NCBI GenBank assembly: GCA_002269645.1
Contig: NIVC01002998.1
Location: forward strand, 1 to 64,000
Direction of reading: 5' to 3'
Length of the DNA stretch: 64,000 nucleotides
Origin: Macrostomum lignano
Taxonomy: Eukaryota
Under the pieces are notes generated by a model. It worked only from the letters and a program-made list of their open reading frames with translations. It searched no databases and was not told the DNA's origin. The position numbers and the translations under genes are program-made. The stretch's first letter is position 1, and every line of letters starts with the position of its first letter. Below are positions 21,801 to 24,800 of this stretch, piece by piece.

Positions 21801-24800
21801 TTTGATACTTATTTAAAAATTATAGCAGGTTTTTATGCAAATTTGACTAAATTCACTTATTTAGTCATTTAGAATCATAAAATTATAGTATTAATTGCCT
21901 ATTATGATTATTATGACTCTATTATGGCTATATTTTAATGATTACTATATGTTTTTAATTGCCATTAATAGGTATTGGACTAGGCAAAGTCTAGAAATTC
22001 CCATGTGACATAATAATAACTTTATTAAGGGCATTTGCCAAAATATTAACTTTATAATTTTATATTATACTAATGATATTAGACTGCTTATGACCTAGTT
22101 ATATGCAATAAAAAATAAACCATTTATAAATAAAACTGTTATTATAACTTAGTATATTTATAATATATGACTTAGTGTATTTATAATGTAACAACATGAT
22201 AAATTATATACTTTTGATAGTATATTATATAATTTTTCTTATTCTATGTCCAATAAGAAAAATTTACATATTCATGTTTTTTGTTGTACTTATACAAAAA
22301 GTAGTGGCAAGGTATATCCTCTTCTAAGTCTAAAATACATTTATTTGCATCATAAAGTAATGCTATATAGTGGTAATGTAGCTCACTTTAAAATTAGCAA
22401 AAGAGCAAATGTCAAAACAAACATTTAATCTATTTAAACTGCCGACGCATTTCATCCAGAGCAGACATCTTCAGGGCAAATGAACCATCAAAAACACAAA
22501 CAAGAATGTATTTAAATTAAATCAAAAAAATTGAGCGAACAAAAAACAGAAAGAATGAAAAAACATGTACATGCTGTAAACCTTTAACTAACAAACCAAT
22601 CAGTTAAGAGGGTGCACCCACCTCATCACCACGCAAACGAGATAAAAAATTCTGAGTTGTTGCTCTATACCTTTACTCACAAGCTGAACATTTAAGCTAG
22701 GATTGTACTTCCCAATGTATGCAGCCTCCAACAATTTTAGTTTTCTATCATTGTTACATCCATCTATCACCTTGAACAACTGCATAGGCTCACAGTCACA
22801 ACATGCCTTGCACATGAATAGGTGGTCTTTAATGGCCGAAGACCCAAGCCAGAAAGAAAGGTGAAAGGTGTCTGTTTTATAGGGCTTATATTGTTTGCAG
22901 TTCTTGGGTGCTCTTCCATCAGGAAGTCAGTTCTCTGACTAGAATCCTTAAATTAAATGGCTATCCATTTGAGTTTGTTAGCCGTATTGTTAACAAGTTT
23001 GTTTCTGAAAAAGTGTCTAGTGTGCAACACGGGAAAGGTTTGGAGATGGACTCTTCGGTCTCGCTGATGATTTTACCATTTCTTGGGTCCACTTCGATTG
23101 ATTTTAAAAAGAAGTTAGAAAAGAGGTTTTTTAGACTGCTCAATTGCAAAAATTAGAGTTGTGTTCAGGACTGAAAAGATTGCGCGCTACGCGAGCAGAC
23201 TCAAATCTAGTGTTCCTCTCCCACTTAAGGCTGGTGTCGTCTATCAATTTCAATGCTCTGTTGATCAGGGTGTTTCCTATATTGGAAAAACTAAACAGCA
23301 TCTGCACCAGAGGGTGAGGGAGCACTGGCTTGGGTCTTCAGCCATTAAAGAGCACCTATTCGTGTGCAAGGTGTGTTGTGACTGTGAGCCTATGCAGTTG
23401 TTCAAGGTGATGGATAGATGTAACAATGATAGAAAACTAAAATTGTTGGAGGCTACATACATTAGGAAGTACAATCCTAGCTTAAACGTTCAGCTTGTGA
23501 GTAAAGGTATGGAGCAACAACTCAGAATTTTTTATCTCATTGTGCGCAGTGTTGAGGTGGGTGCACCCTCTTAACTGATTGGTTTGTTAGTTAAAGAAGG
23601 TTTACAGCATGTACATGTTTTTTCATTCTTTCTGTTTTTTGTTTGCTCAATTTTTTCAATTTAATTTAAATACATTCTCATTTGTGTTTTCGATGGTTCG
23701 TTTGCCCTGAAGATGTCCACTCTAGATGAAATGCGTCGGCAGTTTAAATAGATTAAATGTTTGTTTTGATGTTTGCTTTTTTGCTAATGCTATATACAAA
23801 TTTGCATATATAAAGCTATTTATACTATCAATTATAAGACTTCAAAAATGTGCTAAGTGTATGCCTGATCCTAAGTATGGTACTAAAGCTTAAGCCAAGG
23901 GTAACTCTTATGTCCATCATGTCAGGTTATTTATAGTTTTTAAACTTATTTTAATAAGGTTGAATATAATTTACCTTCATTCATGTATATAATACAGTTG
24001 ACATTTTTTTCATTTTTATTGTATTGTCAAGTTTAATTGAATAATAAAAAAATGTTTTCTTGTTATACTCATATTTCATTTTTTCATGTAAAAATTACAA
24101 ACTATTTCATTTCAGTTTCTAGGTGCTAGATCAAAATACAAGGGTAACAATAATCTTAAATCTTAATGCTTTTTTAAATTATAATTGGTATAGTTCATTT
24201 GTTTTTAACTATGTAAACAGATTTTGTTATGTTGACTTTAATTGGATGAAGGTTAATATTTATTTCAAATTTGATTGTTTATAATAATATAGTATACAAA
24301 ACATATACATATAGATACATTATATTTAACAATGTTTCATATTGGGCTGGTTTTTGCCACTTTTTAATCCTAGCACAGATTTTGGTAAACTTTTTTACCT
24401 TAAGTGCCTGTAGTTAGAGAACCTATGCATGACTGTAGTCTGAAAGGAAGGAAGATAATGATAGGAGACAAGATAAAGTAGATAAGAAAAAAGAAGCTAT
24501 AGAAAGACATACATTAAGCAGAATATATTGTTTTTGTGAAATTTAAATAGACCCAATGGGCAAATAGAGAGACTTTGTAGGCAACAAACCGATTTAATGC
24601 TAGTTGGTAGCATACATACTTGACTATTCAGAAAAAATAGAAAGTGGACTGTAAACATACCTATTTATAAATATCCAATGTGTTTTGAATTGAATATGAA
24701 TATCATTTAGGTGTGCTAACATTCTTAATAGTTAAAACTGTTCCTAAAATCATTGCTGAGTAAATAGGTATCATTTTTTAATAGTTTTTTTTCGTAAAAA

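Follow-up and report, generated by a model that had tools for sequence, protein, structure and literature searches.

The first 64,000 nucleotides (nt) of contig NIVC01002998.1 of Macrostomum lignano, a stretch that we call the window, contain two small hammerhead ribozyme motifs, one on each strand, 1263 nt apart. The forward motif lies upstream of the first recognisable coding exon of a gene for a P4-ATPase, or flippase, and on the same strand: do these motifs serve the gene, or do they belong to something else? The answer that we defend, and hold to be very probable, is that they are passengers of a dead mobile element, borne by two truncated copies of a Penelope-like element (PLE) inserted head-to-head. 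The segment that extends from 22370 or 22393 to 23788 would be one old insertion of a canonical PLE with a C-terminal GIY-YIG endonuclease, in which a 5'-truncated forward copy (22866-23788) is abutted by a shorter, inverted, 5'-truncated copy (22393-22852, reverse strand). Each copy would end in the 3' region of the element and bear there the minimal type I hammerhead of a pseudo-long terminal repeat (pseudo-LTR). The feature is of an ordinary, already described kind, of which this locus is a further instance.

Two hammerheads in an inverted repeat

The forward motif, at 23705-23742, reads CCCUGAAGA-U-GUCCACUCUAGAU-GAAA-UGCG-UC-GGCAG, and the reverse motif, at 22439-22476, reads CCCUGAAGA-U-GUCUGCUCUGGAU-GAAA-UGCG-UC-GGCAG: they differ at three positions, all in stem II. 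When a fifth pair of stem I (U.G) is counted, the motifs span 23702-23742 and 22439-22479. The catalytic core is present in both, since CUGAAGA ... GAAA ... UC matches C3-U4-G5-A6-N7-G8-A9, G12-A13-A14, A15.1-U16.1 and H17 (not G), and C3 and G8 are those of the standard core pair. Nucleotide H17 is C23737 in the forward copy, where cleavage is predicted to follow it, and its counterpart in the reverse copy is C22444. Both copies pair at the five positions of stem I, which is 5 base pairs (bp) long, at the first three positions of stem II, and at 15.1-16.1 and 15.2-16.2; both have an extra nucleotide, U, between A9 and 10.1, and a G.U pair at 10.1-11.1. Stem II has 3 bp in the forward copy (GUC..GAU), then a C x A mismatch and an A-U pair, and 5 bp in the reverse copy (GUCUG/UGGAU), three of which are G.U wobbles. 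The stem III segment, AUGCGU, is 6 nt long and self-complementary, with A15.1-U16.1 and two U.G wobbles, 15.2-16.2 being a U.G wobble; stem III can form only in a dimer, and its pairing is weaker than that of a perfect palindrome such as ACGCGU or AUGCAU.

The three differences are located at 23718 (C/U), 23719 (A/G) and 23724 (A/G). A CA facing a TG, as at 23718-23719, is the signature of an ancestral CpG, which makes a better paired ancestral stem II, GUCCG..UGGAU, plausible. Two other dinucleotides, U11.1-G12 and U15.2-G, are TpG in both copies; one may conjecture that they are decayed CpGs.

The pattern CTGANGA N8-30 GAAANGCGTC has two matches in the window, for an expected number of 0. 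We also used a relaxed descriptor of the minimal hammerhead, in which CUGANGA and an optional bulge are followed by stem II (3 bp or more) and GAAA, then by a stem III segment that is self-complementary, UH, and stem I (4 bp or more). Applied to both strands of the window, it retrieves just these two sites, and it retrieves none in 200 simulated versions of the window, drawn from a first-order Markov model. The initial annotation of this DNA, made from the letters alone, had reported the two motifs on their respective strands, the predicted site after C23737 and the better paired ancestor bracketed by the two stems II; all of these agree with what we find.

The motifs sit in the arms of an inverted repeat, 22393-22852 on the reverse strand and 23325-23788 on the forward strand, separated by 472 nt and identical at 93.1% over 464 nt (blastn), or at 93.9% over aligned columns. 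The forward arm is the end of a longer copy, delimited by inverted-repeat search, arm alignment, blastn and tblastn. This copy begins with the remnant of an open reading frame (ORF), at 22866-23532, that contains the linker between reverse transcriptase (RT) and endonuclease, followed by the GIY-YIG endonuclease itself (tblastn with proteins P0001 and P0010; Pfam GIY-YIG, E 6e-7). Residues 142-364 of P0001, the closest relative, align to it in tblastn with one frameshift within 23080-23144: the forward copy keeps the last ~223 residues, or ~27%, of a PLE protein of ~820 amino acids (aa), and its endonuclease frame is open over 137 codons. The hammerhead starts 170 nt past the conserved end of the endonuclease ORF, and is followed by a terminal segment of 46 nt (23743-23788) that is found in both arms, with 93.5% identity, and that is the 3' end of the element. 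The inverted copy consists of the last ~69 codons of the GIY-YIG domain (22645-22851, reverse strand; residues 296-364 of P0001, tblastn E 3e-16), the 3' untranslated region, the hammerhead and the terminal 46 nt. The two copies face each other head-to-head, with ~14 nt between them. Since each carries the element's own 3' region, the two motifs would be two copies of one element-borne ribozyme, and no device of the host.

The unit is flanked by a direct repeat of 12 nt, TAATGCTATATA, read directly at 22358-22369 on the left and at 23785-23796 on the right, where it shares its first 4 nt with the end of the element. Between the left repeat and the end of the arm homology, at 22393, lie 23 nt (22370-22392, reverse strand) that are a candidate for the one-sided tail of PLEs; repeats and extension together would represent a probable target-site duplication and such a tail. 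Among PLEs, an inverted 5'-truncated copy beside a truncated copy is typical (PMC8557442), and one-sided tails of 30-40 bp have been described (PMC8557442, PMC11167929). The locus thus resembles the complex PLE insertions of the literature (Evgen'ev & Arkhipova 2005; Craig et al. 2021, PMC8557442; PMC11167929): it has a truncated copy and an inverted truncated copy, head-to-head, as terminal inverted repeats, a short extra segment of 23 nt at one end, and a 12-nt direct repeat around the whole. It differs from them in that the window holds no full-length unit and no direct (tandem) pseudo-LTR, and in that the extension, a presumed tail, is shorter than the usual 30-40 bp.

What kind of element was it? 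With the 137-aa ORF as query, a full HMMER scan yields 1269 relatives (E<=1e-3). Among them, those of 769-879 aa match the fragment at their extreme C-terminus, and Pfam RVT_1 is found in all five that were scanned, an architecture known from canonical PLEs with an endonuclease. The RT that a single ORF joins to a C-terminal GIY-YIG is known here from these relatives: in the window, the linker and the GIY-YIG domain survive, the RT is deleted, and neither PLE copy has an RT domain. The motif CX2-5CxxC is not present in the window linker, which suggests, by the criterion given in PMC8557442, an element of the Penelope/Poseidon type rather than of the Neptune or Nematis type. No further copy of the element is detected by blastn in the window; exact-product look-ups of the window ORFs, made for other copies, find nothing on record, and a protein word-index search with the PLE fragment gives no match at E<=1e-5.

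Hammerheads of related elements

If the motifs are part of the element, its relatives should have them too. The related loci are the contigs that encode the representative proteins of the HMMER scan, and seven of them provide eight hammerheads, 92-317 nt past the ORF stop. Locus L013 has two, at 88-130 and 2717-2759, one upstream of the ORF and the other 106 nt past its stop, so that both pseudo-LTRs bear one. The others lie 94 nt past the stop in L015 (2619-2663), 119 nt in L016 (1259-1300), 92 nt in L017 (838-881), 120 nt in L018 (1835-1877), 92 nt in L020, and 317 nt in L014, where stem III is a stable hairpin. The copy of L018 has a C in place of the conserved U4 of the core, and is probably inactive. 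In L019, the motif is cut by the end of the contig (2513-2539), and it has G10.1.U11.1, as do the window copies; in L021, only the first core box can be read before the contig end or decayed sequence. The locus that encodes P0001, which is 55% identical to the window fragment, offers only 63 nt past the stop, and no hammerhead is readable there.

An extra base separates A9 from 10.1 in all the hammerheads of the relatives, and is G, A or U in the eight. Their stem III segment is self-complementary everywhere except in L014 (AACGUU, AUGCAU, ACAUGU, ACUGCAGU), their stem II has 5-7 bp except in L016, and 10.1-11.1 is G-C in all eight complete relatives, against G.U in both window copies. The core pair C3-G8 is replaced by U3-A8 in both copies of L013 and in L015, L016 and L017: with the window copies included, the two forms covary perfectly, ten sequences out of ten being consistent, five of each type. 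The same covariation has been reported for Cercyon PLEs by Cervera and De la Pena (PMC4209133).

Short and divergent hammerheads are misaligned by MAFFT, and an iterative covariance-model alignment was used instead. In the eight sequences from outside the window, 92.9% of the cells are paired, compared with 57% when columns are shuffled and 25-43% when a shift of 1-3 columns is imposed on the partners; with the two window copies added, the values are 94.2%, 58% and 24-49%, the paired percentages of both alignments being somewhat inflated by their fit to the structure of the model. Compensatory changes, on both sides of a pair, affect 11 of the 13 pairs in the eight sequences. The initial annotation had made its case depend in part on covariation of stems I and II among genomic copies; the covariation is there, and it holds between PLE families, at related loci, rather than within the family of the window.

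Three covariance models were built without any window sequence: R1 from the two L013 copies, R2 by adding L016, L017 and L020, and R3 by adding L015, L018 and L014. Model R2 detected L015, L018 and L014, then held out, at E 5e-4 to 2e-3. When the whole window is searched with filters off, the two motifs rank first and second with both of the larger models. They score 19.5 and 18.6 bits with R2 (E 0.009 and 0.016), the next match being at 12.3 bits (E 1.4). With R3, the reverse copy scores 22.4 bits (E 0.0027) and the forward copy 21.5 bits (E 0.0046), again with 12.3 bits for the next match (E 1.6). These E-values are rough, by about fivefold either way, and the gap to the background is clear.

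The Rfam models give another picture. With cmscan and the hammerhead families of Rfam 15 (Hammerhead_1, _3, _II, HH9 and HH10), no hammerhead is found at the gathering score in the whole window, nor at E<=10 in 22200-24000. At E<=10, these models also find none of the PLE hammerheads of L013-L020, including that of L014 with its standard core and stable stem III. Since Rfam is blind to the relatives' hammerheads as well, its negative result in the window is uninformative. The search for hammerheads with Infernal or a motif descriptor, proposed in the initial annotation, thus has a divided outcome: the Rfam models see nothing, and the descriptor and models R2 and R3 pick both motifs. Two consequences reach beyond this locus: annotation based on Rfam will systematically under-report the minimal hammerheads of PLEs, even in relatives with strong covariation, and a small covariance model made from PLE 3' ends recovers this subclass specifically.

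Searches farther afield are quickly told. No relative came out of metagenomes scanned with the endonuclease peptide, and no match out of viral contigs scanned with the family-specific hammerhead pattern. With GCCCTGANGA..GAAAYGCGTCGGC, a scan of metagenomes returned 11 loci, all discarded as chance or unrelated matches: none of the six that were examined has a PLE ORF nearby, the other five are mostly GC-rich and probably bacterial, and stem II is poor in most of the 11.

Set beside the minimal hammerheads of metazoan PLEs (Cervera & De la Pena 2014, PMC4209133), the window copies share the CUGANGA/GAAA/UH core, the extra nucleotide between A9 and 10.1, a stem I of 5 bp in a class that has 4-5 bp, the 6-nt self-complementary stem III segment, and the location in the 3' region, or pseudo-LTR, of an element with RT and GIY-YIG. 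The description of the motifs as minimal type I PLE hammerheads, with a tiny self-complementary stem III and an extra nucleotide after A9, was already that of the initial annotation, and both the sequence and the relatives agree with it. The same work reports motifs paired on opposite strands at distances of 100-700 bp, and solitary ones, by the thousand per genome, that stem from truncated PLEs (PMC4209133); the window also has its opposite-strand pair. The differences are G.U at 10.1-11.1 where the class has a highly conserved G-C, AUGCGU with its U.G wobbles instead of a perfect palindrome (ACGCGU, AUGCAU), a wobble-rich stem II of 3-5 bp against the typical 6-8 bp, copies 1263 nt apart against ~100-700 bp, and a host element that is a dead fragment. 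A further comparison can be made with the non-LTR retrozymes of animals (PMC7229834; bioRxiv 10.64898/2026.07.22.740005), which are also of type I with a short palindromic stem III and are related to PLE pseudo-LTRs. However, retrozymes are non-coding units of a few hundred nt, repeated in direct tandem, that give circular RNAs, whereas the window has an inverted pair with endonuclease remnants and no tandem. Vertebrate retrozymes are reported as depleted from introns (same references).

The flippase gene and the fate of the motifs

We now turn to the gene. The P4-ATPase gene is recognisable over 25012-37989 on the forward strand, so the forward hammerhead is in its sense orientation, as the initial annotation had it. 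Using an N-terminus of ATP8A1 as tblastn probe, we place exons at about 25012-25258, 25353-25451, 28171-28392, 28925-29416 and 30250-31035, from 31502 and from 33960 on, and at 36096-36476 and 37327-37989; the first of these is confirmed independently by Pfam (PhoLip_ATPase_N, E 1.2e-19). This first recognisable coding exon, 1.2 kb downstream of the PLE, opens at a CAG acceptor behind a polypyrimidine tract and contains no ATG in frame, which implies at least one further exon upstream. Since such an exon must exist, the PLE (22393-23788) is probably intronic, in the sense orientation. A search upstream of 22350 for an ATG with a phase-1 GTRAG donor gave a single match, 18805-18856, an unconvincing candidate for exon 1 that we did not adopt. 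The introns of the gene include long minisatellite arrays, for example at 29561-30154 and 34250-36090.

Would the forward hammerhead fold? Its hammerhead structure is predicted at -0.6 kcal/mol, and that of the reverse copy at -3.6, whereas a competitor in which GAUGU pairs with GCGUC reaches -7.7; by minimum free energy, neither motif folds better than its shuffled versions. In dimers, the domain-swapped double hammerhead reaches -6.1 and -12.1, while the most stable dimer fold is at -22. If the motif is idealised to C11.1 and C15.2, with stem II given a C-G pair, its double hammerhead is at -26.9 against a dimer minimum of -27.7, values that are illustrative only. The transcript of 22393-23788, for its part, is predicted to fold into an inter-arm duplex of 438 bp at -869 kcal/mol, in which 38 of the 41 bases of the hammerhead are paired with the antisense motif. 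If the region is transcribed, a double-stranded hairpin in the host transcript is thus physically likely, which implies no function.

The two arms have also been drifting apart freely. Over the motif they are 92.7% identical, over the dead coding remnant 94.8%, over the 3' untranslated segment 93.2% and over the last 46 nt 93.5%, for 93.9% overall: measured by the divergence between arms, as a proxy for orthologous loci, the motif shows no excess conservation. Transitions account for 26 of the 28 differences, and adjacent CA/TG pairs are found at 23547-48, 23657-58, 23679-80, 23718-19 and 23770-71, the signature of CpG methylation decay on both arms after the duplication. The missing RT, the frameshifted ORF and a neutral, CpG-driven divergence of ~6% indicate that both copies are dead.

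The role supposed for the ribozyme of an active element, to process tandem transcripts of that element as a dimer, is still a hypothesis in the literature. Single minimal hammerheads of PLEs show no detectable cleavage, and their dimers and trimers show low cleavage (PMC4209133; summarised in PMC6765202); in Anolis, a PLE has no RNA-seq ends at the cleavage site, and hammerhead cleavage is dispensable for insertion in vitro (PMC11167929). Here, a transcript of the forward strand of the window has a single sense copy, which could form a dimer only with a partner supplied in trans. With no sense partner, a weakened stem II and 10.1-11.1 pair, and a duplex with the antisense arm, whose transcription comes first, the single sense hammerhead is most likely inert in the forward-strand transcript, and we infer that the hammerheads have no effect on the host gene.

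Four other readings can be set against the dead insertion. That the motifs are accidents, duplicated by an unrelated inverted repeat, could be argued from the silence of Rfam and from minimum-free-energy folds no better than shuffles; but the simulated windows yield no such motif, models built from other loci place the two motifs first and second, they lie where related PLEs have covarying hammerheads, and Rfam misses those too, so that chance has a negligible probability and is refuted as far as computation allows. Equally negligible is a live or recently active PLE, whose hammerheads would still serve transposition from this locus. The intact core motifs and the open endonuclease frame would be expected of it, but a copy with no RT domain, a frameshift and ~27% of its ORF, with ~6% divergence between arms presumably made in one event, and with no tandem (direct) partner in the window, refutes it for this copy.

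The two readings that give the locus a part in the life of the gene fare little better. In the initial annotation, the forward hammerhead was a built-in switch: it could cut the flippase pre-mRNA co-transcriptionally after C23737 unless it was paired with the antisense arm. The motif has an intact core and the orientation of the gene, the element lies upstream of an acceptor-initiated exon and is probably transcribed within an intron, and domesticated intronic hammerheads are known in amniotes, in RECK, CTCL and DTNB (PMC6155905). Those hammerheads (Rfam HH9/HH10) are a precedent in that they are of type I, thought to derive from retroelements, and in sense in non-coding transcribed host DNA. 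However, they are canonical, with conserved loop-loop tertiary contacts, and for some of them conservation is complete from birds to mammals, whereas the window motif is minimal, without recognisable loop contacts, sign of constraint or Rfam match. There is moreover a single sense copy, in a class that needs dimers and is weak even so (PMC4209133), and it is the copy with the poorer stem II, with G.U at 10.1-11.1 and with a fold, at -0.6 against -7.7 kcal/mol, that disfavours the hammerhead. The masking by the upstream arm, foreseen in the initial annotation, is borne out by the predicted duplex, and it is what spoils the switch: with the antisense arm upstream, and a duplex that nucleates at the loop and grows outward, the partner would be in register once the motif emerges, and masking would be constitutive. 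As the motif of a decayed transposon fragment, without excess conservation, it is very unlikely to act in this way. Slightly less improbable, though still quite unlikely, is that the inverted repeat itself is the relevant feature, an intronic double-stranded RNA hairpin that, if transcribed with the flippase gene, would undergo A-to-I editing, yield small RNAs or affect splicing by looping, with the hammerheads as passengers. The length and stability of the predicted duplex, arms 93-94% identical and 472 nt apart, and the location upstream of the acceptor-initiated exon, on the same strand, are what it would require; yet the way in which PLEs insert commonly leaves such inverted copies behind (PMC8557442), divergence between the arms is neutral, and the formation of a hairpin implies no function.

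The dead insertion with passenger hammerheads has its own weak points. The core (CUGANGA, GAAA, UH) is intact in both copies, which may retain residual cleavage activity, and catalytic inertness is, for this locus, reached by inference. The G.U pair at 10.1-11.1 also exists in L019, and may thus be tolerated; U11.1 and U15.2 may be either decay or the family's own consensus. The clade within the PLEs is suggested by the linker motif, and the fitted alignments and rough E-values noted above weigh on the same side. A co-option, in which residual self-cleavage, after a helicase or editing opens the hairpin, or the 438-bp hairpin itself, tunes the output of the P4-ATPase gene, is very improbable; if true, it would give invertebrates a parallel to the domesticated intronic hammerheads known in amniotes, and would be one of the rare ribozymes or hairpins to act on the pre-mRNA of a host that is not an amniote. 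As a head-to-head truncated PLE insertion with two minimal hammerheads, the locus is a clean example that matters little beyond annotation, where it should be masked as a repeat and not treated as a regulatory ribozyme.

Other features of the window

A near-complete non-LTR retrotransposon, of the long interspersed nuclear element type, lies at 52617-57955 on the forward strand (RVT_1, E 6e-29; RNase H, E 1e-11), with a long ORF1-like region, endonuclease/exonuclease/phosphatase fragments, and frame breaks between the pieces. A GC-rich RT fragment at 1077-1820 (forward; RVT_1, E 1e-5) is unrelated to the PLE.

Two Na/Ca-exchanger segments (Na_Ca_ex), at 47194-51654 and 62385-63229 on the forward strand, have similar N-terminal exons and look like a tandem gene pair, the second being broken by a very long array of trinucleotides, read as poly-Y, poly-T or poly-L in translation. 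Two small forward ORFs, 58809-59234 and 60271-60666, are ~1.5 kb apart and contain one WSC domain each (E 6e-16 and 2e-14); the second has a signal-peptide-like N-terminus. Finally, long strand-biased micro- and minisatellite arrays, at 8258-9700, 14534-16122, 37990-41222, 45036-46043 and 47400-48000, produce spurious long ORFs in several frames, and account for much of the swings in GC skew along the window.

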